From contig CDRNST010000031.1 of assembly GCA_977016875.1 (NCBI GenBank), forward strand, positions 806,001-870,000: 64,000 bases of DNA, written 5' to 3'. How positions within the stretch are numbered: the first letter of the stretch is position 1; each line of letters opens with the position of its first letter. Positions 14,801-53,900 of the stretch are shown here, in pieces. The translations under genes and the position numbers were made by a program. The stretch comes from Pavona decussata (lineage: Eukaryota). The notes under the pieces are model-generated. The model ran no database searches. It was not told the DNA's origin and was given only the letters and a program-made list of their open reading frames with translations.

Positions 14801-17800
14801 TTGTGGTCTGGTCGTTGTGCGTATATTATCATGGTTGGGTGGGAAAATGCTCGGAGATATTGGCTGCATTAAGCTACTCTACAATCCGAGGGTAAATAAA
14901 GATTGATGATGATGATGATGAAGGATTCTCTGTTTGCTTACACATGAATAAGGCATAAGAATGTAAATTTTAGAAACATATCTGCTTTGGGAGGTCATAT
15001 TTCGCGGGACCTTATTGGAGTCACGTGGTACCCACTACAAATGGGTATGGTTCTGACAAGACCAACCTTCCATTTTATCTCTTTTTAACTTTCGGAGCTT
15101 AGATATTATCACTTTTCTTTCTTCACCAGCACCCAATGACCTTTCGACACTGCTGATCACGACTTGCGTCAACCAACTTTCTGGCTTAACTGACTTAAAA
15201 TCAACACAGGCTACTGAATGAGATAACTAGCCTACCTTTCCCACGTCTGGCCTCAAGAATTGTTCAACACTTGGCAATTGACCGCTTGAGCTTTCGATGA
15301 AGGATTCAAGTGTTTCGAGGCTTTCTAGATCATCCAAAGGCAGCGTGCTATTATTTAATAAACCCACTGCCAATACTCCCACACGGGTATTGTTTGTACC
15401 CATGACGAATCTATCGATTATGGATTTGATGAAGTTCATCTTCTCTGATATGTGTCCTCCAGCAACGACAAACAGCAGGTCAACAGAGTTGTTACAAACT
15501 AAAACAGTCAAAATTTTGTTAAGTGAGGGAAATGTACCATACACAAGCGTTTTTACCGTAAACTGCCGCTTATAAGCGCCCCCCCCCCCCGGTTGTAGGC
15601 CCATCCACCTGTAGACCAAAAAATTCATCCGATTAAGCCCCCCCCCCCCGATAAAAGCCCCCCTCTACTTTCGTTCGTGTTGTTACTTTTAATTTTGTTC
15701 CAAATATTGACGTTTTAAAGCTTAATTAAAAAGCAGTAAATAAAAAACGTATATCGATTGACACTGCTATAGCTCGTTTCGAAACTTTTTTTATTCCAAT
15801 TTTAACCCCCTCCCCCCGCCCCCCGCGGATATAATCCCCTCCGTTTATAAGCCCATCTAAAACCTCTTACGAAGTTCTGATTTACTGGGTTTGCAGCTGT
15901 TTTACAAGCGTAATTAACATATGAGTGAGCATTCAAATCAAAATGACTGCTTAACAACGTTGATTTAATTTCAACATCATACCTTCACAAACACCACTCT
16001 TTACAGGAGCGAGATTCGTCTTTGTTCTGCACGATTCGGCCATCATGCTGCAGTTATTAGGGTAGGTATTACTGTCGCTTGCACATACAGGACTGTAGGT
16101 TGGAGGACAGTCTTCCCGGCATACACATCCTGCCGTGCCATTGGGGTACCTGACACACTTTCCATTAAAATCACATTCCTTGATCAAGCATGGGTCAGAT
16201 AAAGCTATGACAAAAACATATGACGATAAAGTACAAACGCCAATCACATGCAGTTAGGAAACTGGTTACATTTTAGCAAGGTACTTTAAAGAGAGTATTC
16301 TGAAGGCTAGAGGCCGTTTACAAGGTCAAGAGTTAAAATCCCGTGGATCAAAGACTCAAGATGTCAAGGTCCCAAAGGTGATAACGAAAAGATGCTGACC
16401 CTGGCTAAATGGAGCCCTGTAGTAGCGCCGTGGACACTGAGAGCCCTCAACTTCCTGTCTTGGAGCATTGGAGCCCTAAATATCCTTGGGACCCTGAGAT
16501 GTCTCATCCACGTGACATACTAAGTGCATACTACTTGTATTAATACTACGTTTGTAAGTTGTGCTGACTGTTAAAATCACCTTCATAGGGGAGGTTAGTA
16601 GCCTATTAGACCACTGTTGCATGAAGCAACCAAAAGTGCAACTACTCGCACCCTGGATGGGATACTAGGCTCGTCACATTACGGTAGCTTAGAACCCATT
16701 CAGCACCTGGGTGTAATAACAACTATGGATCTCGTATTAAGAAGAAAGAAAAACGCAAATTGGGATCCCACATTAGCCGAATCCTTATATTCATTCCAGC
16801 AGATTGAAAAGGCCAACATGAGTTTAAATAACTCGGTTGTTATACCATCTGCTTTTGGACCGAAATAAAGACTTCAGAACTAAAGATGACATTGGAAACA
16901 TATTATATGAAGTATAAACTAAGAAAGGTCGTTTTAAAGTGCACCTAACCCCCAAATTGTTTTTCGCTGAAATAAATCTTTGCACCTCTTCGAAACGCAT
17001 GCCTTTTTGCGCCTTTTTTCAACCAAATCTTGACTTTTTATAGGCCGTAAAAGTAAAATCTAGCCATCATCTGTCCCATGACCGAGCTGGTAAGGGGCAT
17101 GGGTCTATTCGTTACATGACGTCACAAACTGCTTTGCATGCATTTTCACAAAGACTTAATACTATGCAAATGAGTTTGTGACGTCAAGTAAGGAATAGAC
17201 CCATGCCCCTACCAGCTCGGCCATGGGACAGATGATGGCTAGATTTCGTAACTTTTACAGCCTATAAAAAGTCAAGATTTGGTTAAAAAAGACGCCAAAT
17301 AGCGCAATATGTTTCGAACAGGTGCAAAGATTTATTTAAGAGAAAAAAATAATTGGGGGGTTAGGTGCACTTTAAATCAACAATATCACTTTTGATGTTT
17401 ACCTAACGCCATCATGGCCCAAATTCGTTTTCCAACACCTTTTGGGTCAGCATCCTTGTCAGTTTTCACGATTTTATCTTTGTCCTTGTCCGGGCTGAAA
17501 GTTGTAAGCTCGTCCGGATCGGCTTCATTTCCAATAACCACAGTAACAAACTTCACCTTGCCGTCCTCGTATTCACTCGCCAAATTGTCAATTTCACCTG
17601 CCGTATTTACTGTCTTACGGTCAATCATGACCACGATTATCTTCCGAGAGTCTGGTCGCGCACCTCCGCTGGGTTTGAAAAACAGTTGCTTTGTAGTTTC
17701 CAGGGCATGAACCACGTCCGGTGATCCGGTAGGCTGTTGCGCTCCCTTTATAAGCGCTATTAGAGTATCTTCGCTGGTTTTTTGTAAAGGAAATATTATG

Positions 17801-20800
17801 TCGGCATTTTGCCCAAAGACTACCATTGCGTAAAGATGCTTTTTGACGCCATGTTCTTCGACGGTGTACTCGATGGTGGACTTTATGAGTTTAAAGTTGT
17901 TATCAGCGGTAATAGCTGTTGCGCTCACTACAAAAGCGATGTCTAACCTAGGGAACTTCGCTGTTTCTGAAATTAAAAAAATTATCATGAGTGACTATCG
18001 AATCAGACAACAGATTGAGGTCTTCCAAAAACTTCCAGTGGACAATTGCTAAAATAAAAAATAAACAAATTAAAAGTTTCTGCTGAATAAAACGTTTCAT
18101 ATGCAGCTAAATTCACAAACGAGATAAATCGCTACAGTAAAAGTTATGTTAAAATTACAATCTTTGTGAACTGCATATTGAAATTGCAAATTTAATAACT
18201 TACTATCCTTTTTCTCATCACATTCTCTATGTATATTGAGAGATAGCTGATACCAAACGAACGTATGTAAGTAATTAGTGCTAGTTATGTTAGTAATAAG
18301 TTTTGATCTCTATCATGTAGTTACCAGCAAGCAACTTGTCCTGTATCTTGTCTGCAATCTTTATCGGATGATCTGTGTCATTTGCCTTTACGACTTCCTC
18401 ATCAGGGAACTCCTTTTCTAGTTCAGAAACCGGTTTGTCGCCAATGGCAACAGGAATGACAACTATAAATTTCTTTATCAAGTCCTTAGCTGCGTTCTCA
18501 ATGGCTGGCTTGTCGCGACCAGTTGTGGCATCCGTGATTACAACAAGAACCTGAATAACAATAGATAACTGCCAATGAGCTTATAAAAATAAACGGAAGC
18601 CCATAAACATCGAGCTTTTATCCCATCACAAAGCTCTAAAACACAAGAAAAGAAGGAGAAAATTNNNNNNNNNNNNNNNNNNNNNNNNNNNNNNNNNNNN
18701 NNNNNNNNNNNNNNNNNNNNNNNNNNNNNNNNNNNNNNNNNNNNNNNNNNNNNNNNNNNNNNNNNNNNNNNNNNNNNNNNNNNNNNNNNNNNNNNNNNNN
18801 NNNNNNNNNNNNNNNNNNNNNNNNNNNNNNNNNNNNNNNNNNNNNNNNNNNNNNNNNNNNNNNNNNNNNNNNNNNNNNNNNNNNNNNNNNNNNNNNNNNN
18901 NNNNNNNNNNNNNNNNNNNNNNNNNNNNNNNNNNNNNNNNNNNNNNNNACAGAAGGAAATAGAAAATTCTGTGGTCGTTCAGCATGTCAAAATGACCAAG
19001 AAATTCTTCAATTCATGCTGTCCGTACAATAACAAATTAAAAAACAGACTGATGTGTCCTTACGAAGAGTATAGAGGCAAACGCTTGGCATCTGACGCCG
19101 TTATCAATAAGAAAACTTGGGTAATTATGGCGCGCTAGAAAATCGACAGAATAGCACGTACCTTTTGTGCATCTTTCCTTGCAGCATCACTTTCAAACAG
19201 ACTCTTGGCCAAAACAAGAGCCTTGTCCAAAGCGGGCTCGTCGTTATTAGGAGGGATAGAGCCAACATACATCTGTAACCTTCTTGGGTCACTGTACTTA
19301 TCTCTGAAGTGGACCTTTATGGAGGCATCCTTGCCAAAGACAATAAGCCCGTATCTGACGTTCTCACTGAAAAATCGCTCCATTACTTCCTTTACAACAT
19401 CCTGGATCAATCCAAAGTTGTTGTCAGTTGGTAATGCACTGATAGCAAAGACGAGGTCCAACTTTGGCACTTTGGGAGTTTCTTAAAGTTAAATAGATGA
19501 ATAGATTGACGGCGTTATAAGTGCGATTTGCAAATTACGTGTGTAAACTACTGTTGTTTTTTGGCTGAAATGTTTCTGAGAGTTTACTGCGACTATGAAG
19601 CATTTGTTGAGCGTTACCTAGGAAACACATGCGATGTGAGCAACAAACAGTGTCTGTTTAATAATTGCTTATGTATTTGCATGGCACTACAGTTCAAAAG
19701 TTGAATAAGGACTTCGATTCTATTATAAAAACACCTCTTTGACCGCTCAGGTATGGAACGCAATTTAGACCACGTGACGCAGAATTACAAAAAAACTGAC
19801 ATTACCTTTTAGAACTTTATTCATGACAGCTTTAGCGAGATCTGTTGGATCGACATCTTTTGGGACATCAACTAGCACATCTTTATACGGTGAAATCTCC
19901 TCTATTTCCTGAGGATCAATTTCATCACCAATGGCGACAGGAATAACCTTTACATCATCAATGTCCAGTTCTTGAGCCTCCTTCTCTATGGTCTTTTTGT
20001 CTCCTGTAGGCGACTTGTCAGCGATCACAACTAGTACCTTCTTAGCATCGCTGCGAGAACTCAATTGGAATATTTGTTTGGCCTCTTGCAGCGCCTTCTC
20101 CATAGCCGGTGGTCCTTGCTCAAGCTGTATGCTATCGATTGTAGTCAACCAATTCTCCAATGCAGAGAAGTTAGCCTGGAAGCTAAGCACTAACTTCGCG
20201 TCGGAACCATAAGTGATTACTGCATAATGTAGGTTACCTACACCGTATTTCTTTATTACAGATTTAACAGTATCTTTGATTTTCTGGAACGTTTCGTCAG
20301 CACTGAGCGCTGTTGCGCTAATAGCGAAACCCAGGTCGATCTTCTCTGTAATAACTGAATCTGAGGAAGAAGAAAACAAGTGACATATCATGATACTATT
20401 ATCTGACTTGGTGACATTAACGGACGCCTCAGGCAACCGATATCGACCCACTGTTGTTGTAATCTAATTCACTTAACCCATGAACAAATGAATGTCACTC
20501 TGAGTGGTCTCCAAATAAGAGACTTGTGTGATTGTTGTCTTTTTAACGTCTCGACCTAAGTCACGTCAAGGTACAGCTACTGCTGATGTCTAATCAAAGT
20601 TAGTTACTGGTTTATTTAACGATTGTAATTTCTGGGTGTTGAGAATTAAGGGTCTGACTTTCCACAATGCAGATCAGGAATCTGCCAACTGAGTCTTAAG
20701 TGGCCTCCCTACCATTAAGCACTGTGTCCACCAACTGTTTCACAACCTCCTCCACACTGCTCTTTTCTTCTGGTTTGATAACTTCCGGTGAAACAGGATC

Positions 20801-23800
20801 AAAGTCATCACCAAGCGCTATGGCAATAACTCGCACACCATCATCCTTCAACTTCTTAGCGGCGAACTGGACATCATCTTCAGTGCTGTCTGACGTTTTG
20901 TCCGTGATAACAACTAGAACCTGACTTGCGTTTGGTCGAGTGTCTTCTGCCAGAGCAAAAAGGTAGCGTGCTTCTTCGAGAGCTTTGTGCAGGTCTGCAT
21001 CCCCAAGACTCTTCTTCACGTTGTTGATCAGTTTTCCAAGTTCCTCTTCAGAGTCGAATACATTGTCGAATCTAATCTTCACATCAGGAGTTTCGCCGAA
21101 CGTTATGAGGCTGTACCTTACACGGAACAAGCCAAACTTATCAACAGTTCCCTTAACGATGTCTTTCATTTTCTCAAAGTTCTTGTCTTGCTCCACAGCT
21201 GTGTTGCTGATGACAAAAGCGAGATCCATTTCTGGTACGAAAATTGTTTCTAAAGCGAGGTCAAGAAAAAAAATACAGTACATTAACAGAATTTAGATTA
21301 AAGACATAACATTAAAGTATTAAGGCGTTTGCTGTTCCTCCGAGCTCCAACCACCCTGGAGGTCAGAGAGTGGTGGGCGCTCACAGGGTTGCTATGGTTA
21401 CCTTCACTGGGTCTGGTCCCTTTGGGAACCAGTTCTCAGACTCATCAATTTTCGATCAGTTCAAATAAGGTAACGACGTTGGTGCAATGTGGATGCACGC
21501 TTGACTAACACTCTGTTCTACCTTTCGTCCATACAACTGTTTTGCAATGTGAACGATAAAATGGTCATTACATAATATAAAGCTCTGTGTAATATATTTT
21601 ATTGTGAAATCTGGTCAAAAATAGCGTTGTTAATGTATGACCTATGGACACACATTAACAAGGAACGTCGGTCAAGAATACCAACTATTAATAAATAAAA
21701 GGAAAAATGGATAAAACACTGAAACAAGTAAGAGAACAGAGAAGTAACATATCAAACACGAGGAAGAGTGTTTCATCAGATATCCAAACACTGAGAAGTA
21801 GGTTGAAATAACGAGGCGTAGCCGAGTTTTTTTAAACGACTTCGAGGTGTTTGGATATCTGATGAAACACATTTTCGAGTGTTTGATATGGCTTCTCAAA
21901 TGATTAATAATTCTTGGAGAAATTCAAGGCTAAAGTTGGCAAAATCTTATGGTGATTAGGATCACATATCCAAACCACGGTCACGGTAGTGATTTTCTTT
22001 GTTTTCTCTTGATGAATTATTAATGAGTTTGAGAGGTAGTAAGCAAGGATTGTGCTGGCAAAGTCTGACGAGCGTGAAACCAATAAACAATGAAACCAAA
22101 ATTCTTATGTTACCCTCTAAAACTTCCGCCATGATGTCCCTAGCTAGTTCCTTGGATGTTGCATTAGATGGTCTCTTGATAACATATTTACTCCGAGTAG
22201 TTATTATCTCTAGTTCGGTGTCATCGACTTCCTCTCCCAAACCAACTGGTATTACTTTGACTTTGGCCATTTCTAGAAGGGAAGCCTTTTCCCGGAGCTC
22301 GCCTTCAGCACTATCAGATTTCTTGTCTGTTATAACGACGAGAACCCTTCTCACTCCGGGTCGTGCATAACGTTCAAATGTTTCCTTCGCCTTTTGCAGT
22401 GTTGTATCCAATGCTGAGCCAGATGCGATGGGCATTGACCCTATGAACGTTTTCAATAGTTCATCGCTTGCAAATTCGTCATTGAACGTGATCTTTACAG
22501 ATGGAGAGGAACCAAAGATGATGAGGCTGTAGTGAATTCTCTCCTTGCCATAGGCATCTACTACCTCACCAATGACATCTTTCATCTTTTGGAAGTTAGC
22601 TTCTGACCGGGCAGCATTGGCGCTGATGGCAAAGGCAAGATCGACTTCCGGGATGATGGGCAAATCTGCATTAAAATAGAACGAAACGTTAAACAAAGTG
22701 TTTCATCTGTCTTCGTAATTTGAAATGAAATGTACACAACTCACTTGAAAAGAACCACACATTGTCAGCTACCGTAAGAACGAATGGAGTTATTGTCTTT
22801 CGCAAAATACGTACGGTGACTGTTCGACGTTTGAGAAGATGGCAACAGACCGATACACCATGAGGTTTCTTAGAAGACGGTAAGTGAAAATAGAGGATGT
22901 GCGAGCACTTAAATGGGTGCGCGAATGAATAAGCGAGTGTTTTCGAAGCTTATAATTCTGAACTCCTCACCTTTCAACACAGTTTCCATAACTACATCTC
23001 CTAGCTTTTCTGGGTCTTCGTATTCATCGGCTTTTATAAGGTTTCCTTTGTTTGGTACAATCTTGATCAGTTCATTAGGATCAGACTCAGTTCCTACAGC
23101 TACGGAAATCACTTTGATTGTTTTATCTTCAAGCGGTTTTGCAGCCTTTTTAAGCATCTCCAGAGCATTCCCAGATTTGCTACCCACAAACACGACCAGA
23201 AATTTCTTAGCTCTGGGTCTTGGCGGTGCGTTTTCAAACAATTCCTCTGCTCTTTTAATGGCCTTTACGACGTCTGGACGGCCACGTGGTCTAGGAATGC
23301 TCAGAACATATTCCATGAGCTTGTCTAAACTGTCAAACTGTTCTCCAAACTCTCTTACAGAGCTTGGTTCAGTTCCAAATGGAAGAATGGAATAGCGGAT
23401 TTGATCATAGTCTTTATGCTTTTCGATGATGCTCTTCACCGCTTCTTGCATTTTCTTAAACGTTTTTTCCCCATCTAAGTCAAAGGTGCTCATGGCAAAG
23501 CATATGTCCATTTCTGGAATACCTGGAGTTTCTAAAAGAAAATAAAAAAAAAAACATAGTCACCATGAACAAAGCTGACAATAATGTCCAGCAAGAAAAT
23601 TGACGAAAGAGAAAGGGTTTTTATTTCTTAGTGTTGTTTTATTGTTGAAAATGTTCTTATATTGCCTCCAATCATCAGATAAAGACATCCGTTATATCAT
23701 TTTACAGACACGCATCGTGAAAAGTGATCGTTTCTCCAAGACACAAGTCACGGAGAGGTTTTTGGAGTATTTTGCAGTAAAGGACATTCGTCCAGCGCTT

Positions 23801-26800
23801 TAACAGTCACTGAAAAACCTCTTCAGATAGGACGGTCGCCCAACCAGTTTTGAGTCTTCAAGCAGAGCCGAAGCTAGTATGAGGCAAGACGAGGTGCTTT
23901 CCTGGTCAAAGATATGGTGTATAAGAAGAGATATGTAGAAGAGGGAAACAAAATTCGGGATCACCATTGACTTGGTACTAGTATCACAAAAAGGCGACCA
24001 TTTTACACTTGACCAACACTGATTTTTTGAACAAATATCCATGAAGAATCATCATCATCATCATCACAACATGGGGTACTTACTTGCTTTCATTATGATC
24101 TCATCTGCAATTTTCTCTGGGTCATCATCCTTGTCAGCTTTGATAACATCGTCATCATCAACGGTAGCGTTTGTAAGTTCTGCGACGTCAGCTTCACTGC
24201 CCAGTGCTACAGGGATGACGCGGATGTTGTTGTTTTCCAAGAGTACAGCGGCCTTTCGAACATCGTCTTCAGTGTTGTCTGATTTCTTATCAATGACGAC
24301 AACCAGCACCTTCTTGGCATCTGGACGAAGATCTAATTTTTTATGAATGAAAAAAAAAAAGGAAAAAAAAGAAAGGAAGATGCATACATACAATTTACCT
24401 GTATGTGGAAAAATCCAACAGTAAGTTAATCATGCCCATGTCTAAACATCTATTTGAAAAATATTTTCATAATTGAGCAAATCCATTGCTTTTACTTCTG
24501 GGTGAAGCAATAAGAATGACTCTTTTGAAGCATAACGGAAGACTAGGAAATTTCTATTTAATTCTCCGTGGCATGACCCCTGAAACATAAAGTACTTTCT
24601 GTGTTCTCTTATTTATAACCAATCTATTCTTTCTTTAAAAGGGACTTTTTTTCTTCTTCTTCTTCTTAAGTCAAATTTTAGCTTCTGTTCTGCTGTCGTC
24701 TCGACTTTCGAGTCAATCATACCATTAAACATTAGTGATAGTGATACACATGCTAAAATATGTAGAATCACTAATGTTGTCCCTATAGAGTGTTTTCATT
24801 CACGTGATTACCGGCCATATTGGTTTACTGAAACAAAAGAAAGTATTTTCATAAAAATAGTGTTCAATTCCCAGAGGTTTAGTTTGGGACACCAACATGG
24901 CCGCCATTTCTTTGTTTTGGGACACCAACATGGCCGCTCTGACGTCATGTGAAAACACTCCATTCGTGGCGTTCTCACACCATACGTGTACCACTAGTAT
25001 TCCGTGACACGTCTTGTTATCACCACCAACCTTGAGCTTCATCAAAGATCCCCTTTGCTCCTTCCATGGCCTTTTCCAGTGATGCACCGCTCGATTGCAT
25101 TCCGCTATTTTCAATTGCACTCTTCAGCCTGTTGACTTCATCAGAGATGAAATTAAACTTGAAATGAACATAAGGTTCCTGGCCGAATGTTAGCAGGCTG
25201 TACTTGAGCTTTTTGATGCCATATTTTTCAATAATGCTGTACATAACCGTTTTTATGTAGGCCATGTTCGCGTCTGATTCAGTTGCAGTGGTGCTGATGG
25301 CAAACAGCAAGTCCATTTCAGGTATGGAAATCCTCTCTGTGATAACAAGAAAAATGACAAAATACTAAACATTTGTTGATTGCAATGTTGTTTCAGAAAA
25401 AAATTGGTTGTACAAACGATTATGGAACCTGGAAGCAGTTGCTTCTACCACCCTAAGCTACTCTGTGTGCAATTAGAGCATTCCATGCACCAATCCACTT
25501 ACCCAGGCCTTATACTGATCTACGTATAGTATAGATGTAATGCACTTAAGAACCTTATCTAACAAAGTAACAAAATAAACATTCGTCTAACGAATAAACA
25601 ATTGTCATCTAGCGAGAAGGGGACCTTTGGGCTATTCACATGCAATGCCTAGAGGGGTAGCTCAATGCGTGACTGCCATGGATATTACAAACCCATCTAG
25701 TTGTAAGAAAGATGGAATTGAACCCCAGGACCTCTTTAACTAGTGAAGAACCCTAACCACTGGGTCACATTCCCCTTTTCTGTAAGTAAGAAAGATTGAT
25801 TGTTCATTGTGTCACGTTGTCTGCTCTCGATCTATATAAGGCGTCTAACGAGCGGTGATTACTGTTGAGCAGAAACAAAATTCTGTGGCATTCAAGAAAT
25901 GATAACCTATATACTAAGAAGATAAGTGCAACATTCATGTCAATGGATGATTTTCAGATTAATGTTACAAATGCCTCCGTGAGCCCATAATTTCAAATTC
26001 AATTAACTCCCACAAAACGCGCTAACTTTGAACTCAAAGTTTATGTAATGTCCATACTTACACTCACAGTGTACGCCTTCCGAAAAGACAAAAATGGCAA
26101 ATTATTAAAGATAAATTAACAACAAACCTTTAAAAACTTGATTCATAATCTTGACTTTGATGTCAGTGGTATCATTGCTTGTGTCAGCGGTCACCAAATT
26201 GCTTTCGACATCCGGGAGTTGTTTTAGTTCCGTTTTGTCAGCTTCTTCACCGAGAGCTACAGGAATAACTATGACGTCATTTTCTTGTAGTGGCTTCACT
26301 GCCTCCTTTATTTCACTGTCAGTGCTGTCAGACTTCTTGTCCGAAATAACTATCAATACTTTTTTAGCATCCGGTCTTCCTTCTCTTGAGAACATGTCCC
26401 ATGACGACTTGACAGCCTTAAGGGAAGACACATAACAATAAACCTGACATACAGCTTCCGAGTAAGATCTCTAGTCAGACAATATAGAACACAAGGAGAG
26501 AGAAAGTAAAAGAAGGAATGCGAGCACGAAACATTTTTTAACTTCAAATCTGCCTTTACTTTTGTCTTTTTCCGAGAACTTGAGTCTCTTTCAAATGCAG
26601 TGTCGCAGCGCTGAAACCCGACGAAGAGTCATTCAAATTCTTGAAAATATTGCTGCACTGTCATTATCTAACCTCTAGACCACGAATATGGAGAACACAA
26701 ACAAGTCAGTATCAACATCAGTATATATTTGACATGAAATTCACATACCTCTGCCAAGTCAGCACTGTCTGTGTCCCGAGGGAATGCATTGATTACGGCC

Positions 26801-39700: not shown

Positions 39701-40813
39701 TCATCTTCTTAAAGTTTGCTTCTGATTGGAAGGCTGCGGCGCTTATAGCAAAGGCAATATCCATTTTTGGGACATTAAAATCTAGTGGATAAAGCATGCG
39801 AGAGTGAAAATTAATATCTTAAACATGTCGAGAATAAAATGTGACAGAACAGCTCTAGTTAAAGTTAGCATCAGTAGTAAGCTGTCGTGTAAATATGACA
39901 GTTATCTTGAGCTCTTCAACAAAACTGGGCAACTAAACGCCTCGTCAAATTTTTGAAGAAACAAAGTGTGACACCCCGCTTCTACTATCCCTCATCTAGA
40001 GACATACAATTAAATCTTAAGTTGACTTGATTAAAGGTCGATTTAGGGCCAACAACTTTGCAGAGATCACAGGGAAATGCCATTGCGTTGTTCGTTGGTA
40101 CAGAACATATTGGAAATTGCGCATACACCAAAACGATTTCTAGTATCAAAGCATATAGTACTGGTCTAGTTCCCATGGCCGCAATCATTTAGTTCAAGTT
40201 AGTTTAAAGAAAGAAAACTTTCGCAGTTTATTTAACACAAAGCTGTATATTATTGGGCTGGATATTTCTTTTGAAATAAGCCTAACAGTAAAATAGACAA
40301 AACATGATTCATTAACATACCCATGCAGCTGTATTATACAACTTTCCGTCAAAAAACGTTTTTGTGAGGTGTCTAGAAGTAACAATCTCCAAGCAATCTT
40401 TTCCAATTAGACAGTGGTTCGTATTACTTAAGGAAGCGAGAATTTGTTCAACCTCGATTCTCTTCGGTGACATATGGAAAACACTCACTTCGTTACCTAG
40501 GGCCTAAACTGTGGAATGATCTCACTCCTAGAATAAGATATCAACCCTCTCTGAAGCAATTCAAAAGAGTCATACGTAATCAGGACCTTACTGCCCTAGC
40601 AGCAAATGTCAGTAACTGTCGAGGCTGCAACCTATGCCGAGAATGACAAGGGTTTACATGATTTTTTGCGATTGATGTATGAAATTTTATTAATATGGTT
40701 TACGATGTAAATTTTAATTCATTTTTTTTAGAATTTTCTAGAATTTAGTTTGGTGTTCACTATTAGTAGAGGGGACTTCTCCCCTCAGCTACATTTCTTG
40801 ACACGTTAATAAA

Positions 40814-40969: not shown

Positions 40970-41921
40970 TAATATTATTATTATTATTATTATTATTATT
41001 ACGGGTGGTTTCCTATACTTTGATTCTCCGGAAATCCTGCATAGGTACAAATCATCACTACGGATGTTACTGACCTTCCAAAACTTTCTCCATGATTTCC
41101 TCAGCTACGGCATCGGGGTTTTCAGTATTTGGAACGTCTATCAAATTGTCTTTTTCTGAAGTTGTTTCTTCGATTTCATCCGGATCAGCTTCTCTCCCAA
41201 AGGCAACTGGAATTACCTTGATGCGAGATCTCCACAGATCTTCTGCGGAATCTTTGACGTCTTCAAGGCTGCTATCGGACTGTTTGTCGGTGACAAGAAC
41301 CAACACTCTTTTCGCATCAGGCCGAGGAGAAAGCTCGAAAAGATTTCTAACTGCGTCCAGTGCACTTTCAAGGTTTGATCCTTCTCTATTTGTTGTCGTG
41401 TTTTGTATGATATTTTTCAGCTGCTCATCATTGACTGGTTGAGTAAAGCTGACCTTAACTGTAGGGGTGTTTCCAAACACGACAACGCCAAATTGGATTT
41501 TTCCAACTCCATACTTGGTTATGACCCAGTCAATAATGTCTTTCATTTTTTGGAAGTTTTCGTCTGAGTCCAAGGCAGCATTTGCACTGATAGCAAAAGC
41601 CAAATCTAAGTCACGTACCTGCGGGATGGCTGCAAGAAAGTAGAGAAAATGCTTAAAGTTAGAAATGTAAGGAGGTTATCATCCTGATGAATTTGTACCA
41701 GGCATATAAATTATGTTGTAGCACTGTTCCATTGTAAGTAATAACATCTTCGCTGTGATAAAAACGTTCATTGTTATCATGGGAGAAAACTCGAAGCTTG
41801 ACAGTTGAAAACACGTCTAAGCAAGAGTAGATAAACAGATCAAATAGAAGAAAGATCCCCGCAGTTACTACGCAACTTAAGCAGTCTCAAAAAGAAAGCC
41901 TGAAAAAAAAATTTAGGCTTG

Positions 41922-41967
<46 letters not shown>

Positions 41968-44900
41968 TTCAGTGATCTTTCATCCACAGTTCAAAATATA
42001 CGTTTCATATATTTACATTTATTTAGTAGATAAACAGAGTTGACTTTGGGATCAACTATCAAAACCTTAATTACATGTAATCCATTTCTCTGAGGCCTGT
42101 TTGCCAATACATTCAGTCTCCTCAACCGAGAATAGTACCACTTTGAAATGGTTAGCAATACCACAGCCTAAACGATGGTTTCTTTTCAGTAGAACTCGGG
42201 GAAAGAACCAACAAAATTAATCAGAGCCCTTGAATTCCTGTAAACATTTTCTCTGCCAGGTTTAGGCCTCAAATCGGTTGAAGAGGATTTAAGTTTTGAT
42301 TCTGTGGATAAATTCGGTTTAAAACCTACTGACAAGTGCTTTCCAGTGGTGCTGTTCAAAATATAAAAGCTTCCTTTAACGTTTGAGCATGTAAAGGAAA
42401 CCATTTAATCTGACCATTCTAGTGAAAGCAGTGCTTTCCTTTGGTAAATTTAATTATGCGGTACAAGGTGATTCTAGCGTCTGAGTCCGTGGATGAAACC
42501 CTAACATGAATTCAGGTGAAGACTATTAAGCAGTACTTTGCTGAGCTACAGTGTTCTGCGTTACAAAAGGTGGTTCCACCTATTGAGGCAGTGGGTGAAA
42601 ACCTTACATTGCTTTCAGATGAAAGCTACTAAGCAGGTTTTGCATGGTAATACTCAGTTTTGTCCTTTTTTATTTTGGCTACTTTTGGGAGTTTAAGGAT
42701 ACACCAACCTTCTTGCACTTTGTTCATGATTTCTTTTCCCAGTTCATCAGGATCCTCATCTTTGCTCACATTCAAAATATTCTGTTTGTCAGGAGTCATC
42801 TTCTCCAGCTGCGTGGAGTCTGCTTCTCCTCCTAACGTTACTGCAATCACTGTGACTCCTTCTTCTTCCAAAGGTTTTGCAGCTTCTTTAATGTCAGCTG
42901 AAGTCGTAGGCGACTTAGCATCAGTAACCACGACCAACACCTTGTTTGCCTTTGGTCTACCAGAGTCATTCGCGAAAACTTGCTTTGCTTCCTCTAACAA
43001 TATCTTAAGTTCTGGTCGACCGGAGGGCTGCGGTAGTTTGTTAATAGCCCTGATCAGTTTCTCCACATCTTGCGGATCTCTTGAGAATGACACTTCAGGA
43101 GTTGCCGAGTCACCAAAGATGATGACACTGTAGCGTAGTTTGTCTGGACTGTGCTTATTTATGATACTTTTGACTGCGTCTTTTACTACCTCAAAAATTT
43201 TATCAGCATCGGCACCAGCAGTATTGATGGCAAAGGCAACATCAATTTCCGGTGTATCTGGATAATCTGAAACAAATATGCATCAATTTTATTATTTTAA
43301 TTATTTTTCGCGTTAACTAAACTGTTGATGATGTCAAGGTTTTCACAAACAAACCCTAGTTTATTTTGTAATAAACAATGAGGGTTCTTTGGACTTACGA
43401 CGAGGCAGCATGGTTTTTTTTAGACTTCTTCAAGGCCGTTCTCTTGAATCAAATCCCTAACCCCATCCAACAACCAAAATGTTTTTTTTTACAACATAAT
43501 AGTCAGGAATTCAGAATTACTGACTACATTTGGCGCAACTAGAGGTGACTAAGAATCTAGGGAGGAAACCACAGCCCCACGATCGCCCAGGCTCACTACA
43601 ACCCAAGAAAAACTGCATGCCGTAAAACAATCATACACCACTAGGCTCTTTACGGTAATATGCAGAGGGGACATTAAGACAATCACTGCAATGCGCAAGA
43701 GCCTCGCACACCAATCCGCTGACACTTACTAACACCACGATAAATACACTGGGCAACACACCTTCGAGAGCTTCCTTCATGATCTTTTCAGCTGTTTTCT
43801 TTGCACCATCAGTACTGTTAGCCTCAATGACTTCACCTTGTTCAGGCGTCAAAACATCAAGTTCATCTTTGTCCGACTCTTCTCCAAGAGCTACAGCAAT
43901 AACCTTGATATCTTGTGAATCCAGTACAATAGTCTCTCTCTTCAAATCGCTTCCATCACTGTCGGAAGTCTGGTCGGTTATGACCACCAGCACGTTCTTG
44001 GCATTGGGACGAGATTTTGCAGCAGCTTTGAATAGCCTGGATGCCTCTGTTAGGACCTGATCTAATGCAGCCAAAGGTCCATTCTTGGAAATGTTATCTG
44101 GAATGAAAAGAATAAAGGGACTGTGTTCGCATTGTAAATGTCCTCTGAAAGGGATAGAAAAATAGAGCATGGAAAGTAAAGCGGCCAACATTATCTGAAC
44201 TAATGATCGACGACATGGAACATTACTTGGTCATAGGTTCATCCCCCACATTACCCATCATCAAATAATCACGCCTACCTCCTAGGATCCTTAACAACCT
44301 AACTGAAGGGTGAATAGCATTATTCACCTCCCCATTAAAATTACACCCACTATATAACACTTGTGGTACCTATAAATCTTTCTAAATCCTCATCAGTGGG
44401 GAGCTGTCGATCAAAAGGCAATTCGGTGGTAACAGGATCCCCAAATGTTATTACAGCATAGTGAATTCTGTTGGAGCCAAACTCCTGCACGATCGTTTTA
44501 ATGACATCTTTCATCTTTTCAAAGTTTGCGGCATCATCCACTGCTCGGGCACTAATAGCAAATGCCAAGTTCATTTCTGGTATCTTTGGGACGTCTGAAA
44601 GAAAGAGAGGAAAAAACAAACAAACAAATGAGAGCATCAAGTTGACGTCTGATGGCGAAAGGGGTCTTTGCTCTGAGTCGTCAATCAGTTTCAGAGAAAC
44701 TTAATGACAAGAAAACTATGCAAGATTGCACTAAACTTCCAAAATCTCCAAGTAAATAGTGGAGGAGATCTATTTTCATGCAGACGTTACAACATCGCAC
44801 GCAACTAATTCCTACGTAAAACCATGGAGTGTCATTAAAACCAGAAAAGAGATTGACAAGCTGCAATTTGGGACACTCAAAATGCACTCTGTAGCTGGGA

Positions 44901-47900
44901 CTCCTTCGGATATTTCGACCAATGTGCATTCACAGGAAAGGTATAATTAAAATTATGCAGTAAAGAAAATATAACACACTCCGGTTTTGCCGAAGTGAAA
45001 CATTATTTCGAGCGTTGATTTCAAGAAAGGAAAGGATACATCTCTTTTCTTGTGTCGATAACGTTATGATAACAGATGAATTCGAGAACCCGAAAAAACC
45101 CTGAATCTTTGGCCTGTGATTCTGCACCCTTTTCCTTCTACCCGATCGTCTCACGGAAAACAACTCCAAGAAACGTTAACATGTAACAGGGTTACCTTTT
45201 AGGGCCTTCCTCAGTATAACCTCACAAGTTATCTCCGGATCATCTCCTTCATCAACGTCAATAAGGTTCTCTTTGTTGGGTGTGGTTTTAGCTAGTTCAG
45301 GAACGTCAGACTCCTTTCCAAGCGCAATTGGAATGACCTTGATATCGTCATCTTCTAAGGATTTCGCTTGACGCTCCAAATCATTAAGAGAACTGCTGGA
45401 CTTCTTATCAGTAATTACCACAAGTATTCTTTTAGCCTCAGGCCGGCCTTGCGTCTCAAAGAGTAGTTTTGCTTGTTCGAGCGCTTTATCTAACAATGCA
45501 CCCGAGCTCTTCTGCACAGAATATACTAAAGCCTTCAATGCTTTATCGTCCAACGAAGCAACATCATTGAAAGATATTCTTGTGGTCGGGATATTTCCAA
45601 ATGTAATGACTGCATATTGGATACGGGATGTTCCATATCTGTCAATCATTGTCTTGATAATATCTTTCATTTGTTGGAAATTCTCTTGGTCTTTCAGAGC
45701 GTTGGCACTGAGGGCAAAAACAAGGTCCATTTCTGGAATAGCGGGTGGATCTATAAAAGAAAAGTTACAAAAAAATGTCGACCAGCATAATTGAATGTGA
45801 TTAATTCTCAGCAATGCAAATTACTTTAAATTGATAATAGTTTAATATGATACCTCCCAACAGAGAAAAGGGTTTAACAAGAATAAAAACCTCTTTTTAT
45901 AGAGTAAGCCGGGAAATGAACATAGCATGGCAGACTCGGACATCGAACCCTATAGCACATCTAGCCCGGCCTGTCAAATTCCCAACACCATTTCCTAAAC
46001 AAACCTGTACAGTAGAACCCGCTTATCCAGTTCAGTTTTATACTGCCGCATTTTAAACTCTTCAAGATTAATATTATTCAACTCTTTCAAATGAAAAATT
46101 CAAATTAATATAAAAAGAAATGATGGAAAGCTAGGGAATTTTTCGCTTGAGCGTCGTTTCAATTTAGCCAAGAAACAACTATCAGTGTTTTACCTAAATA
46201 CAGACAACACACCACCACTGAACTTGTACAAAGCTCTTACCTTGTATAATTTTGTCTATAATTTCTTCACCCACGCCTGAAGGGTCACCATCCTTGTCAG
46301 TGGTAATTATATTTTGTTTGTTGCTTGTAATGGATTCCACTTCCTCTTCAGCAACATTTGGCTCAACACCAACAGGCACAATCTGGATGTCATCATCTTC
46401 CAACACTTTGACTGCTTCTTTGATTTCACTGAGATCATTTATGGACTTCTTATCCATTATCACGGCTAATACTTTCTTGGCATCAGGTCGGGCGGGTGCT
46501 TTATCAAACATGTTCTTCGCTTCCCCTAAAGCCTTTTGCAAGTTAGGCTCACCTCGGGGTCGCGGATGTTGATCGAGAAGTGTTGTAAGCGCCAATTTGT
46601 CAGGGAACGTTTGCGAGAAAGGTATGTATGTGGTGGCGGAATCTGCAAACAAGATAACGCCGTATCGCATACTGGCAAGTCCATATGTGTTCACGATGTA
46701 CTTTATGACATTTTTCATGTTTCTGAACGTATCGTCTGCACCGATGTCTGTAACACCAATCATAAATCCAAGATCAACATGGAGCACTGGCATAGAATCT
46801 GGAAAGAAAGTACCCAAAATCAAGATCTAGTTCCTCATTAAAAATAAGCTTTTTGCGCTAGTGTAGATTCGAGGCCTTAATCAAATGCCTTGTTCTAACT
46901 TGTGCACTTAACACATGCATAACGAAATATCGTGTGTAAAACGGTGTGAGATTAGCACAAAGACAAGAAAACAAGCTGTTTTCATTTCTGATACTTGAGC
47001 TTATTTTCAGTGGTGTTTTTTTCTTATGTGTCTGTGGGCGTAAGAGCAGAGCTGTGGGTATGTATGTTGCCTTATTTCACTAGTGGAAACCGGTGTACAC
47101 GCGAGATAAGCGCAAGCATAAGTACAACAAAATCAAAGGCACTGTGGGTCTAACGTTGGTTAACACACAATTTTTGTTAGGCTTGTGCTCGGTTCGAGAA
47201 TACCGACCGATTTCTTGGACATATTAGAATATGCAGCAAGGTTAAAACCGCTATACACATTTTACGGGACCGAAAAACAAAGGGTGGGATAAAAGCTTAG
47301 AATCCAGTGCCAGATGTTCCGTTCCCTTCTGGGACCATAGCTACTTATGGTTCCTAAAACGGTAGAGGAAGAACTTGGATACACATCGTTTATGCGTAAA
47401 GAAGTCATTATGACGTTTTGATTGTCTATCTATAAGCAAACCAGTTTAGTTATTTCCTTCATCTCTAGAACTGATTTTCATAAGTGCTTACCATTCTTTG
47501 CCTTTTCCATCACTTCAGCTGCAATATCCTTTGCATTGTCAGATTCATCGGTCTCAATCACGTTATTCTCATTCAAAGTCGTTTTGGCGATTTCCTGCGG
47601 ATCACTTTCTTTTCCGAATGTGACAGCGATCACTCGGACTTCATCTTGCGCTAGCGATTTCGCAACAACGTCTACTGAAATTTCGTCACTGTCCGACGTC
47701 TTGTCCATGGCTACAACGAGAATCCTCTTTGCACCAGGTCGGCTAACAGCCGCTTTCTGTAAGAGCTCCCTTGCTTTCTTGAGGGCCCTACTTAAGTCAG
47801 CTCCATCACTGTTCTTCGAAATGCCCTGAAGGATTTCTCTGATTCGCTTAGGATCGCTCTGGTTTCCAAAATCAAGTTCTACACTTGGGTAGTCACCGAA

Positions 47901-50900
47901 GGTAATGACACTGTACCGCACTGAGGTTGAACCGTGGGTATTGAGAATCTCGTGTATGACTGATTTCATCTTCATGAAGTTATCATCTGACTTCAAAGCT
48001 GTAGCACTGAGAACAAATGCAAGATCCAGCAGCTGCTCTTTGACGACCGTCTCTAAATAAGAGAATAAAAGAGATTGTAATGAAGGAAATAAAAAGGGAA
48101 AATGTTTACATAAAAGGAGATTCAAATCCCCCCTGCTCGCAAAAAAAAAAAAAGAACAACAACAACAACGATTGACCACCTGAAAGTAGAGAATGTATTT
48201 TGATAATAGAGAGATTTAGAATCGCGTTTACGGCAAACGGCAAACGTGAGATTCGCGTTAATGTTTTGTTAAAAAAATGAGTACATAGATGAGAATAGCG
48301 CAAAATAAATCAGGCCTTTGATGCTAACGCAGGGTAAACATGGTCACGTGGCCATTTCTGTCGTTTACTGTTTGCCGTAAACGTAATTATAATCTCTCTA
48401 ATATATGTTTCCGTAGAACAAGCAGGCAGGAAATAATTTGCAAGAAGGTCACGACTTTTTTAACGTATACATGTTTCGGACGAAACTTCATCCATCTTCA
48501 GTACAAGCAAAAGAACCCGGTAGTGGGTGTGCTATAAAGGCAAGAAGGATACAATAGCGTTAAGACTATGCTATATTCTTAATCGTTATTGTACATTCAG
48601 TTCCAAAATAATTTCTAATAATGTAAGCATTTACCTTCGAGCACTTTGATCATTATTTTCACAGCTGCTTTCTCTGGATTCTCGTCTGTTTCCATTTTCA
48701 CCAGATTCTCTTTGTTTCGGGTGATTTCTGTAAGTTCATCAGGGTTTGCCTCTTCGCCGAGTGCTACAGGTACAACTTTAATGCCTGACTCTCTCAAATC
48801 TCTCTCCTTCTCCCTGGTCTTCTCAGGATCGCTCGACTGGCCCTGGTCCATAATGACAACCAAAACTTTTTTTGCATCGGGCCTAGCTGTATCCTCAAAC
48901 ATCTTCCTTGCTTCGTCGAGAGCCTTGTCAAGAGGCGAACCAGAGATACTTGAGAAGCTATCCACTCTGTTCTTTAGAAACTCGATAGTGTAAAGTTCAC
49001 TTTCCGCAAAGCGAACTATCTTTGAAGGAACATTGCCAAAGAGGATAAAGCTGTAGCGAATGTCCCTCTTTCCATAACGATCAATCACGGCCTTGATCGT
49101 GTCCTTGATTTTCTGCAAGTTTGCATTTGCATTTGTAGAACCAATGCTGATTGCGAATCCCAGGTCAAGTTTTGGAATTCTTGGAAGCTCTGTAAACCAC
49201 GAACAACAAACAAACCAAAAAAAAAACAACAACAACCTGAGTTAACAAGTCCCTGAGAAACGTTAGATTCCTGATATACTTGATAACAGTGTTTCATCGG
49301 GTGGAGATTGTTTTAAACGTAATATCAACACTTTTTTTTTCAGAACTGTATAATGCTAATGGCGGGGAATCTGTCCTCCTTGTACTGCCAGATATTTTTA
49401 GAAAATTATTACTGAAAACAGATATTTGAAGCTGATGCTGATACTGAAAAGATTACATGAATCAAGCCTTAGAGAGTAGTCCCAGTGCCTACAGTTCTAT
49501 GACAGCTCATATTAGCCAAGACAAATCGTTAGAATCCACTTTCCGTATCATGCCTTTCTGACCTGTTACTTACCTTTCAAGGCCTTGTCGATTATTTTAT
49601 CTGGCCATGTTTCGGGTTCAGGAACTGGGCAGACAGCTATTTCAGCTTTGTGTTCAACTAACACGTCAATTTCATCCACGTCAACTCCAGGACCAACAAC
49701 AGCTGGTACAATTGTAACATTCTTATTAAACAGCGGTTCCGTGGCTTCCTTGATGTCATTTCGGCTATTAGTGGATTTCTTGTCTATGAAAATAACCAGT
49801 ATTTTCCTACTCCCTCGCCTGGGAGGGGCGTTTTGAAACCGGCTCTCCACTTCTTTCAATACAGTCTCGATGTTTGGGTCACCCACTGGGCGACTGAGTT
49901 GCTCCACAATTGTCCGCAATTCATCCTTTCCTCGGTCATCACCGAAGTCAACAATGACTGAAGAGGTGCTGCCAAATGTGATTATTGCATAGCGGATCTT
50001 GTCTGTTCCGTATTGTTTTATGATGGTGTCCAACGTGTCTTTCATCTTATCAAAGATGTCGTCAGCGTCTACAGCAGCAGCACTCAACGCGAAGGCCAGA
50101 TCGATTTCAGGGATATCTCGAGTATCTGCAATAAAGAAAAGCGTTTTTCGAGAAGAATACAGTTCATTAGAATGGTGAATAATTAAAGCTCCATGTTGAG
50201 TATATAAAGGCGCATTCCTCGAGAGAAATATTGGGCCTGAAATCGGTACAAGTATTTGTAAAGACCAAACATTTTTTAGCATTTACTCAATTGAGTAATA
50301 TCTTGGCATGGACTGGATATATAACAGGCAACTACATTTTATGGTGTACCGACCAGGGACCCGTTTCTCGAAAGTCCTGGTAAGTCACCGGGCCCGATAA
50401 GTCTCCTTACAGAAATCAATTTTTGTTAGCTTTGAATACTAAAATTTTAAAATCTTATAATTCTATGAAAACATTGGCCAAGTACCATGTCTGTAATCAC
50501 TGTATAATCGACTTATCGGGCCCGGTAAGTTACCGAGACTTTCAAGAAACGGGCCCCTGGTCCGGCCACCAAAGCGTTGATGCATTTCTGTTGACACATA
50601 AAATAGCAGCCACGTGCCGGAGCAGCGTTTACATAGTGTTCTTAGGCTGTAGCGATAGTTTGGAACCCCCGTGTTTTCGGTGTTGGGGCCGAAAAACAAA
50701 CAAAACAAAAACAGGTTAGGGTCAATCGAATAAATATAGGGTTTACACGAGCAAAAAGGCGGTACAGCTTACATTTAGGTAATACAGAAGGAACATTTAT
50801 CAGTGTTCACGACGCCATATGACCTTTGAGCTGTTTTATAAACACCTTATCAGAGCAACACCATTCTTTACCTTTGTCAATATTTTTGATAATCTCCTCA

Positions 50901-53900
50901 GCCACCGAATCTGGGTTATCTGTTGTATTTGTGAGAATCGAAGTAGAAGTAACGGCATCTACTTCCCGCTTATCCACCTCATCTCCAATGCCAACGATAA
51001 TCACTTTAACGCCATCGCCTTCCAAAAGTGTCGAGGAAGCCTTGACATCGATAATCTCGCTATCAGACTTTCTATCGACAAAAACCACGAGTACGTTCTT
51101 AGCAGCCGGTCTTTTCATGGCCGCATCTTTGAAAAGGCTTCTTGCTTTTTCTAGGGCTTTATCAAGGGATGTTTTGCCACTTGGTTTGTCGATTGAGTCA
51201 ATGGTTCTTCTCTGATCTTCCGCTGACATTTTGTCATCGAAGTTAATGTGAACAACAGGAGGATCGCCAAACGAAAGGACACTGTAGTAAATGATTGCTG
51301 CTGGGTAGTTCTCCATTGTAGCCTTAATAATGTCCTGCATTTGCTGAAATGTTCTTTGCGAGTCCAATGAGTTGGCGCTGATTGCAAAACCAAGGTTGAC
51401 CTCAATTAATAGAGCAGGATCTGAAACAAAAAAAGTACGCACAAAATGGTAGCTCCCCTTACTTATTTGGAAATGCGTTTGTTCCAACCCTCTGGTGAAG
51501 TTGGTGGGGATGTGGTTGTCTAGTGGTTAAAGCGTTGAATATTTCACCTTAACGGATGTCGTATGGGCTACCCATGACACTAACGCGATGTCACCCTTAC
51601 TTTACAGCCAATAATTTAGTAGCAGTAATACCCCACCGTCGATGATATTCTATCTGCTTATTCACAGCTCAGCTGTTGCCATCCAACTACCTTTCTCGGC
51701 TGTTTCCGATTTAGACGATTAAGTCGCCATCCATTAACTGTCTACAAACAAAATGGATCTCTGTTTTCTAGAAAGAATATTCTGTTCAGGCGCATGTGCA
51801 CTGCTAACCACTTTTATACATCTGTTATCTGCTTTGAATACAGCTGATAACAGTAAAAAATAAGCTGCTTGATTTATTTAAAATCTATCTAAGATCAATA
51901 ATTTGCCTCTGCTTTCGACATCGGCAAATGGTCGATCTACTTGCCACTAACAGCGCGTGATGTTTTGCTTAATCTGTCCCAATTATTGATCATTATAAGA
52001 ACAATGGCAATATCAAAGCACCTTTAATTGCCTTTTGGATTTGTTCATCGATACTGTCTGTCACTTCTTTGGGATTATCAGATGGTTTCACTGGTACAAT
52101 GCGATCTTCGTCGTCGGTTACTGGTTTAACGTCCTCTTTTTTCACGTCACTTCCTACTATAACTGGAATGACTGTCACGCCCCGATACACAAGTTCCCTT
52201 GCTTTGGTCTAAAAAATAAAGAAAAACAGAACACTCCAAGTATTCGTAATTGTATAAATACGGATATAGCTAAGGATTTATATGACTAAGAAGTCTAATT
52301 GCTATATCAAATTATTTCCAGAATATTTCTGGAAATACTTGCAAACCATCCGATCACCTTCGACAAAGTTCGGATGATCTTTAGAAGTCGCCCAGAAATC
52401 TTGAGATAATTCAAACGCTCCCTTTAGGCGGCCTTCGAAAAATTCCGGGATATCTTCGAAAGTAATTGGCGGTCTTCAGAAATCTTTCAGTAGTTTTTGT
52501 CCCTACTAAAGTCGGAAAGTACCCAACAAGTGATGCCGTCGTTAGAGCCTGGCAAACTACTAAGGCAAACTCAATAGACGAAACAATGTCTCCTCGACAA
52601 TCTTTCTAAGCTAAGCTATGTTCTTTGATCTGTTGGTGGTATCTAGTTTTAGTAGTAGTTTTCGCCCATATGGATGTGCCAGCGTGATGCTAAAATTGGT
52701 TACACGGGATCTCTTCAATAATTGTTTAGTTTTTGTGAAAAATGGTTCACTTTGGGTGAAATTTTATCTCGTATTTGTCAAGTCTTCGAAGAAAAAAATC
52801 CAGTGAGCAACAACTAAGTTGACCCACCACATTGAAGGCATTTAATACTCCCTACTTCCTAATACATGTTCCACCATTAACTAGGGGTGGGGTATTTTTG
52901 GCGGGTAAAGGGGTCACTGTCTAACTAACCCGAATATCGCATTAAAAATGACGGTACCCAACATTGTTGTCGCTCCTGGTGGCTCAGTTGGAAGACTAGC
53001 ATTTAAAAGGTGCTTGTCCGGCCCATGGAAAGCACAAAGGCCCTATGACGCCTACCTTTACGCTACCAGTTTCGCTTGCTGATTTTTTGTCCACGATCAC
53101 AATGAGAATCCTCTTTGCATGATTTCGTTTTGAGCCATTGAACAACGTCTCCGCTTTTTCTAGAGCCGCGTCGAGATTTGGCGAACTAGGCGTCGATATT
53201 AAACCATCATCGACGGCCTTCTTCAGCTCAGCAGGGTCTGTAACTTGGCTTGTAAACGGGACTTTAATAACAGCTGATGACCCAAATACCATGAAGCCAT
53301 AACGCACTCGGCCGACTCTGTATCGATCGATCATTTCTTGTACCGTTTCTTTCACAAGTTTAAGGTTCTCTTGGGTCACACCTGATGCAACACTGATAGC
53401 AAAGCCAAGGTCTATTTCAGGTCCTTCTGGATCTGCATAAAGAGGATTTATTAAAACAAATGGATTGCTATCAAATAGAACAACTTAAAGCGATGAATCA
53501 AAGGTTGCAGCACCCATAATAGAGACTAATATATCTTGTGCAATGTGACATTCAAAATATATAATTCAGTAATATCTATAGGTGAAGACAGAACAACAAA
53601 CAAGAAAGGCGATTGAAGCGACAGTCATATTATCTACAAGGGTAGAAAGGACGATAGTGATAACAATAATGAATGCATAAAGGAATGATGATGATGATGA
53701 TGATGATGATGACGATGATGTCGACGACGATGATGATGATAGCAAAGTATCGTTTTGGCGAGGTTACATTAAATTAAACATTAGGGATCTTAAGCAACCA
53801 CGACGACAACATCAACAAAATCGTATTGAGAAATATAATTCACGTTAATTCGAACTATCTTGAGAACATTCATTCCAATTCGTTCAACCTGTGCAACGTG

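Follow-up and report, generated by a model that had tools for sequence, protein, structure and literature searches.

How does a protein built from dozens of copies of a single domain come to repeat itself not every domain but every third one, and does such a period serve any purpose? The question is raised by a 64,000-nucleotide (nt) stretch of the genome of the coral Pavona decussata (assembly GCA_977016875.1, contig CDRNST010000031.1, positions 806,001 to 870,000; G000:C31:806001-870000), referred to here as the window, which is eukaryotic DNA of ~40% G+C occupied by one long gene on the minus strand that encodes vWA (von Willebrand factor A) domains in tandem. An initial annotation, made from the window's sequence, had pointed to a loop of 6, 5 and 4 residues in successive domains, had divided the domains accordingly into types C, A and B, and had proposed that the array grew by duplication of a three-exon block. 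We consider it very likely that domains vWA11 to vWA34 represent an ancient amplification of a three-exon C-A-B cassette that has since been frozen.

Domains were called with a hidden Markov model (HMM) made from the long open exons of the window itself, which gave 41 vWA domains, all on the minus strand, and the numbering vWA01 to vWA41 is the one already in use. Reading a further 45 kb upstream added 21 domains, labelled with u-numbers, so that the original count of 41 holds for the window and the whole array comes to 62. The assignment to the vWA family is supported by Pfam PF00092 scores of 75-81 bits for vWA20, vWA21 and vWA22 (gathering cut-off 23.8), and towards the gene's 3' end Pfam also detects Kazal modules and a GON domain interspersed with the last domains. 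The window holds the central part of one very large transcribed coral gene, with at least 62 tandem vWA domains that lack the metal-binding motif, followed by Kazal/follistatin-like modules and GON. The introns between domains are all in phase 1 and the exons measure 537-564 nt, and the domains therefore abut with almost no linker. A single internal intron splits 13 domains in the window, eight of them among the 24 domains discussed below, and for these split domains the best in-frame GT/AG option was picked by HMM score.

The loop was measured in the alignment, from the nearly invariant Phe at the end of a helix to an invariant Arg. From vWA11 to vWA28 its length runs through six perfect cycles of 6, 5, 4, and from vWA29 to vWA34 it reads 5, 4, 6, 5, 4, 6. 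The class lists originally drawn up are borne out by these aligned lengths, including the absence of a C domain between vWA28 and vWA29, and the proposed outer limits of the region prove to be exon ends, 51420 being the first base of vWA11's exon and 17403 the last of vWA37's. The 24 domains of the periodic core, which occupies 20713-51420, are as follows.

50872-51420, minus strand: vWA11, type C, loop 6, a single phase-1 exon.
49574-50125, minus strand: vWA12, type A, loop 5; 68% identical to its orthologue L006_02.
48635-49189, minus strand: vWA13, type B, loop 4; splice acceptor read directly.
47492-48052, minus strand: vWA14, type C, loop 6; groups with B on trees.
46241-46798, minus strand: vWA15, type A, loop 5.
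45196-45750, minus strand: vWA16, type B, loop 4.
43762-44594, minus strand: vWA17, type C, loop 6; two exons, intron 44098-44369.
42709-43266, minus strand: vWA18, type A, loop 5.
41075-41629, minus strand: vWA19, type B, loop 4.
39221-39781, minus strand: vWA20, type C, loop 6; the domain used for fold prediction.
37911-38471, minus strand: vWA21, type A, loop 5; the query of the homologue search.
36782-37333, minus strand: vWA22, type B, loop 4.
35857-36414, minus strand: vWA23, type C, loop 6.
34674-35541, minus strand: vWA24, type A, loop 5; two exons, intron 35023-35332; the 3' exon and its donor are in the RNA contig.
33185-34229, minus strand: vWA25, type B, loop 4; two exons, intron 33453-33942 immediately before the loop; all three junctions are in the RNA contig.
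32324-32881, minus strand: vWA26, type C, loop 6; both junctions in the RNA contig.
31112-31669, minus strand: vWA27, type A, loop 5; both junctions in the RNA contig.
29131-30192, minus strand: vWA28, type B, loop 4; two exons, intron 29363-29869 at K|VLVV; junctions in the RNA contig.
27302-28330, minus strand: vWA29, type A, loop 5; two exons; directly follows a B domain with no C between (phase slip).
26128-27014, minus strand: vWA30, type B, loop 4; two exons.
24084-25336, minus strand: vWA31, type C, loop 6; two exons, intron within the loop.
22971-23531, minus strand: vWA32, type A, loop 5.
22114-22665, minus strand: vWA33, type B, loop 4; forms with vWA28 the closest pair of the array (46%).
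20713-21249, minus strand: vWA34, type C, loop 6; the periodic core ends here.

On either side the cycle is lost, with loops of 6, 5, 5, 6, 5, 4 and 4 residues in vWA04-10 and of 4, 5 and 7 in vWA35-37. Further upstream, 16 consecutive domains from u15 to vWA01 all have a loop of five residues, and because the length is kept over so many domains in a row it can be read as a slowly changing marker of descent.

A cycle of this kind might be an artefact of the assembly or of the gene models, produced by collapsed or mis-joined repeats or by wrongly chosen splice sites that create the loop lengths; there is one assembly gap in the span, and among the eight core domains with an internal intron, vWA25 and vWA31 have theirs at the loop itself. 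This explanation is vanishingly unlikely. The exons are present in RNA-type runs under the organism's code and in "coral metagenome" runs, and when one such independent run was compared with positions 29101-35100, a spliced contig of 26,942 nt was found to omit exactly the predicted introns, matching six predicted junctions to the base (29362|29870, 30192|31112, 31669|32324, 32881|33185, 33452|33943 and 34229|34674). All of the omitted stretches end in CT..AC, which corresponds to GT..AG when read along the minus strand. Internal splice sites set the loop lengths of vWA25 and vWA28, and both sites are confirmed by this contig; the six-residue count for vWA31 rests on the splice model, the contig comparison having covered 29101-35100. 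The only run of N in the window (18665-18948) falls between the two exons of vWA36 (19162 | 18550) and so lies outside the periodic core. The two halves of that domain cover HMM positions 10-119 and 118-199, are complementary and join in frame at good GT/AG sites, and their phase-0 intron at K|VLVV occupies the same position in eight other domains; on this sequence evidence vWA36 is likely to be continuous across the gap, although a gap longer than drawn might conceal further exons. Independent assemblies of other corals, described below, give the same domain order and the same loops.

The pattern is not confined to the loop. The predicted enrichment of identity between each domain and the third one along is in fact present throughout the domain. 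In raw alignments of vWA11-28, identity at lags 3, 6, 9 and 12 is 37.9, 38.5, 37.5 and 37.2%, against 31-34% at other lags, and with the loop columns removed the corresponding values are 38.4, 38.7, 38.2 and 37.7%, against 32-35% elsewhere. Identity within a class averages 37.2% and between classes 33.1% (z 9.4). When periods of 2 to 8 were scanned, only 3 (z 7.7) and 6 (z 4.7) were significant, and leave-one-out assignment to a class without the loop was correct for 22 of the 24 domains. As an internal control, the 23 upstream domains from u17 to vWA06 show a flat lag profile (34.2-36.1%) and no significant period, and the period therefore belongs to the central 24 domains rather than to the family or to the method. 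Period 3 in vWA02-10 reaches z 1.5 (p 0.06), and the 38 domains outside the core are non-periodic.

These results bear directly on the possibility that domains were duplicated one at a time and that three loop types then evolved convergently in regular order. Nothing speaks specifically for such convergence; loop length, being a simple character, may change more than once, and one orthologue has three residues in place of four. Against it, the class signal persists after every motif of the initial annotation is dropped along with the loop (z 8.0, p <= 0.0002) and is significant in the N-terminal, middle and C-terminal thirds of the domain, each taken alone. Maximum-likelihood trees built without the loop columns, from 40 rows (the window domains) or from 93 rows (orthologues added), also cluster the classes. 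On the 40-row tree the class labels need three changes, compared with 11.8 when shuffled (none of 200 shuffles as low), with seven of the eight C domains in one clade and five A domains forming a core. On the 93-row tree four changes are needed, compared with 33.7 for shuffled labels, a branch separating type A from B and C appears in 99% of bootstraps, and six of the eight C positions fall in one clade (91/90). Approximately unbiased (AU) tests did not reject a single clade for C (p 0.40) or for B (p 0.19), and a control group of eight domains taken in the wrong register was rejected (p 0.0006). Convergence is therefore highly improbable as the source of the period.

Several features of the same analyses nevertheless weigh against an origin of the core by block duplication. 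The expectation of three separate A, B and C clades holds only in part, the division of A from B and C being solid and C being mostly one clade, whereas B is a clade on neither tree and forms a grade around C on the 93-row tree. On that tree vWA14 and vWA31 lie outside the C clade, among the B groups, with weak support, and the deep branches of the domain trees are in general weakly supported. The within-class distance matrices are moreover uncorrelated (Mantel r -0.10 to -0.25, not significant), in a comparison of low power where differences are near noise, and only one pair of blocks, vWA26-28 and vWA31-33, stands out, at 41.8% mean identity. Because the three matrices are uncorrelated the order of the block duplications is not recoverable, and congruent class histories, which would point directly to the copying of blocks, are not demonstrable; the case for block duplication therefore rests on positional periodicity and class kinship rather than on reconstructed events. 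So read, growth by three-exon blocks is well supported, by the whole-domain similarity at lag 3, the clustering on trees, the phase-1 introns, and the C-A-B order in orthologues and in a more distant homologue.

To find these relatives, the vWA21 exon was used as a query and retrieved exon-sized proteins on long contigs of other assemblies, at identities from 94% down to 44%. The orthologous contigs that were read are L006 and L007 (scaffolds named as Tara coral metagenomes), L008, L009 and L010. Collinear one-to-one orthologues of vWA11-30, vWA14-27, vWA18-33 and vWA21-34 are found in L006, L008, L009 and L010, respectively, with identities of 62-76% in the first three and 53-63% in L010. The loop has the same length in 60 of 61 comparisons, the exception being one vWA22 orthologue with three residues, the phase slip at vWA28/29 is retained in L006, L009 and L010, and the internal introns of vWA24, vWA25 and vWA29-31 are conserved in the orthologous contigs. 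A further contig, L011, reached from a 43% match, was dropped as a relative when it proved to hold an unrelated EGF-vWA-ZP gene.

The orthologues also allow us to weigh in-register gene conversion, by which concerted evolution between every third exon would have made unrelated domains alike. Conversion is common in tandem arrays, but within-class identity here is only ~37% with no tracts of high identity, the position-specific orthologues in the four assemblies are 53-76% identical while the next-best paralogous matches reach at most 47%, and every position represented by more than one species forms its own clade on the 93-row tree with 100% bootstrap support. The position-wise orthologues and clades imply that homogenisation has not been active since the species split and that the architecture of the array predates these species, and we hold conversion to be a very improbable cause of the period.

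The cassette itself is older still. L012, a distant array with 36-47% identity, whose nearest kin in the P. decussata genome lie within this same vWA array, has loops of 6, 5, ~4, 6, 5, 4, 6, 5, ~3 and 6 residues; on the tree, those of its domains with six residues sit within the C clade, those with short loops with the B groups and those with five residues near A. It is this combination of cycle and class placement that argues for the greater age. In the paralogous arrays of the same genome (C76, C95, C79 and C251) the C-A-B order is absent.

Taken with these observations, an ancient C-A-B amplification probably proceeded as follows. Each vWA domain is, or originally was, one exon between phase-1 introns, and since all inter-domain introns share that phase, exons can be copied in blocks of any size without disturbing the frame. 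Domains vWA11-34 very likely descend from a cassette of three already diverged domains, C-A-B, each of ~185 residues. Type A resembles the non-periodic upstream domains, and B and C are most closely related to each other; the probable origin of the cassette is therefore an array of A-like domains in which a B/C lineage was born and then split. It would then have been copied in tandem about eight times, most simply, we infer, by unequal crossing-over in register, because once two cassettes exist a misalignment by three exons is presumably the one that matches best. One unit would later have lost its C domain, or gained an extra A-B pair, and the copies then diverged until they shared ~37% identity with members of their own class and 33% with those of the other two. 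Thereafter each position appears to have been maintained individually by purifying selection, with homogenisation undetectable.

An AlphaFold2 (AF2) model of vWA20, made with an alignment of 50 single-exon domains, has a predicted local distance difference test (pLDDT) score of 92.8, and in it loop residues 98-103 link helix 86-96 (alpha3) to strand 108-115 (beta4). The model matches integrin I domains, vWF A domains (including A3), the N5 and N2 domains of collagen VI alpha3, and PTMP1 with template modelling (TM) scores of 0.80-0.85, and the closest solved relative by sequence is PTMP1 (E 5e-12). In the vWA fold, the loops leading from a helix into a strand are on the side away from the ligand site, which is also where the two ends of the chain emerge, and from this general topology the 6/5/4 loop is probably near the joints between domains. 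The DxSxS motif of the metal ion-dependent adhesion site (MIDAS) was found within the first 40 residues of none of the 62 domains, the consensus there being D-L-x-F-A-I-S-A. The alignment holds 26 class-discriminating columns (mutual information, MI, >= 0.8), where 10.4 are expected; mapped on the secondary structure they spread over helices and the loops of both faces and give no clear class-specific interface patch. A complex prediction with vWA20, vWA21 and vWA22 as separate chains returned no answer for vWA21 as a partner (score 0.00), which is evidence neither way.

It had also been suggested that C-A-B forms a structural unit of ~555 residues, or matches a periodic partner, and is kept by selection as in titin and nebulin. 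This would be an addition to block duplication and not a replacement for it, and we regard it as rather unlikely. In its favour, loop length is invariant within each class over eight paralogues only ~37% identical and is almost invariant among orthologues, the class-discriminating columns exceed expectation, the cycle recurs in the distant L012, and the loop probably lies near the joints between domains. On the other side, the slip in which A follows B with no C is conserved in three other assemblies, which a strict ruler should not tolerate; the remaining 38 domains of the array are non-periodic; and the columns that distinguish the classes lie dispersed across every element of the fold. Loop stability alone is no proof of selection for a period, since the loop is equally stable, at five residues sixteen times over, where the array is non-periodic. 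A more specific version is more doubtful still: the three loop lengths might set three joint geometries, and the 24 domains of the core would then be arranged as a rod or zig-zag, repeating every ~555 residues, to which a periodic partner in the coral's extracellular matrix would dock. If true, it would give the rulers of titin and nebulin their first counterpart that is extracellular and built of vWA domains.

In those muscle proteins the period matches the lattice of a partner, the thick or the thin filament. What the coral array shares with nebulin and with titin, whose A-band contains super-repeats of 7 and 11 domains, is an array of one domain type, a peak of similarity at a lag greater than one, and the duplication of a block of diverged domains. 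A partner lattice is known there, whereas the coral array is not known to have one; its period is interrupted by the conserved slip and spans only 24 of 62 domains, and its domain is an extracellular vWA rather than an Ig/Fn3 domain or a nebulin module. The amplification logic is also that of satellite DNA, in which, once a multi-unit block has been duplicated, unequal exchange in register amplifies the block. Alpha satellite higher-order repeats follow the same logic as the coral cassette, although the coral copies, unlike satellite DNA, are old, protein-coding and ~37% identical, and their homogenisation has ended. Duplication of such a block has been described for the seven-module unit of nebulin, along with the more general tendency of repeats to grow within the middle of arrays by gaining several domains at once (Bjorklund et al. 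2006, PMC1553488), in a paper that leaves vWA unmentioned.

A known extracellular array of tandem vWA domains is that of collagen VI alpha3, whose N10-N1 domains are arranged as beads on a string (PMC3919171). The coral array resembles it in consisting of tandem vWA domains with one domain per phase-1 exon, and in fold, the vWA20 model giving TM 0.83-0.84 to the N5 and N2 structures. It differs in having 62 domains instead of 10; in the absence of triple-helix coding, no Gly-X-Y run of six or more having been found in any frame of 109 kb, a scan that did not extend to the 3' end of the gene beyond the window; in the vWA20 model, which stops in the last helix without the long C-terminal extension of N5; and in its C-terminal end of Kazal modules and a GON domain. 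Proximal thread matrix protein 1 (PTMP1) of the mussel byssus (PDB 4CN8), a close match in fold, is an invertebrate matrix protein in which tandem vWA domains abut directly, but it has only two domains and, according to the title of the entry, a MIDAS able to hold zinc, a site whose DxSxS motif is missing from all the coral domains.

In the literature searched, a higher-order period was not reported for any vWA array, collagen VI included; no paper combined "super-repeat" and "VWA domains", or "GON domain", coral and von Willebrand factor; and none described this coral protein, the coral skeletal-proteome and sea-anemone matrisome papers covering other vWA proteins. The growth of arrays by several domains is established, and block duplication of this kind in an extracellular domain family such as vWA had not been noted in that literature. 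From the locus one can see how a matrix-type gene that ranks among the largest in animals came about, from a non-periodic array of vWA exons in the middle of which a three-exon cassette was amplified, giving a protein with at least 62 vWA domains (~11,500 residues from vWA alone) and an mRNA of at least 27 kb. Its architecture is frozen position by position across corals, and it provides a clean, datable case of multi-domain block duplication in which periodic and non-periodic hexamers of the same protein can be compared structurally. The map of classes and positions should also be useful to annotators, such genes usually being fragmented or mis-collapsed.

The regions flanking the core are summarised in three further lines.

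57308-64000, minus strand: vWA01-07, opening the non-periodic N-terminal regime; this goes on for 21 domains upstream, to G000:C31:903419.
52022-57862, minus strand: vWA07-10, loops 6, 5, 4, 4.
17403-20360, minus strand: vWA35-37, loops 4, 5, 7, not in the cycle; the gap-bearing intron splits vWA36.

Domains vWA07-10 are possibly a ninth, degenerate C-A-B triplet with an extra B-like domain, a weak suggestion given that their nearest classes are C, A, B and B by margins of only 1.2-2.4 points, with no support on the tree. Two domains outside the cycle and 26 domains apart, vWA10 (52022-53426) and vWA36 (18325-19481), are sisters on the tree (97/81), which may reflect an old long-range duplication flanking the periodic core. 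In the upstream part of the gene (G000:C31:870001-903419, loci L001-L004) the three most N-terminal vWA domains are strongly diverged and many of the 21 upstream domains are split by introns, while at positions 1-17000 of the window Kazal/follistatin-like exons alternate with the diverged vWA38-41 and there is one GON exon, at 8834-9478. The length of the 26.9-kb transcript contig implies that the mRNA extends past base 1 of the window.

Some minor observations concern introns. The phase-0 intron at K|VLVV, at the start of strand beta4, occurs in nine domains (vWA28, vWA36, vWA38, u21, u16, u15, u13, u11 and u04), with sites in the window at 29363-29869 (vWA28) and 18551-19161 (vWA36), and either was present in the ancestor and disappeared from most copies or marks a position where insertion is favoured. 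A second common site, K|VIPV, is shared by vWA29 and vWA39. In L012 (ENA ERZ25070530, a contig at 2.8x coverage) nearly every vWA domain is split by a short intron of 70-300 nt, in contrast to the P. decussata array, where most domains occupy a single exon. Two intronic segments of the window, 30423-30501 and 33738-33835, are matched by many unrelated contigs of RNA runs, to a summed depth of up to ~3,200; ARAGORN found no tRNA gene in the introns with these very deep contigs, and the loose ends near 33671 resemble the tRNA-like arm of a short interspersed nuclear element (SINE).

Elsewhere in the same genome, two three-domain vWA arrays lie in opposite orientation ~90 kb apart, at C76:2521372-2524134 (plus strand) and C76:2615654-2619406 (minus strand); both have loops of 5, 4 and 5 residues and resemble the non-periodic upstream domains of the 62-domain gene. 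A separate array of seven domains, at C251:769493-778966, has a loop of six residues throughout.

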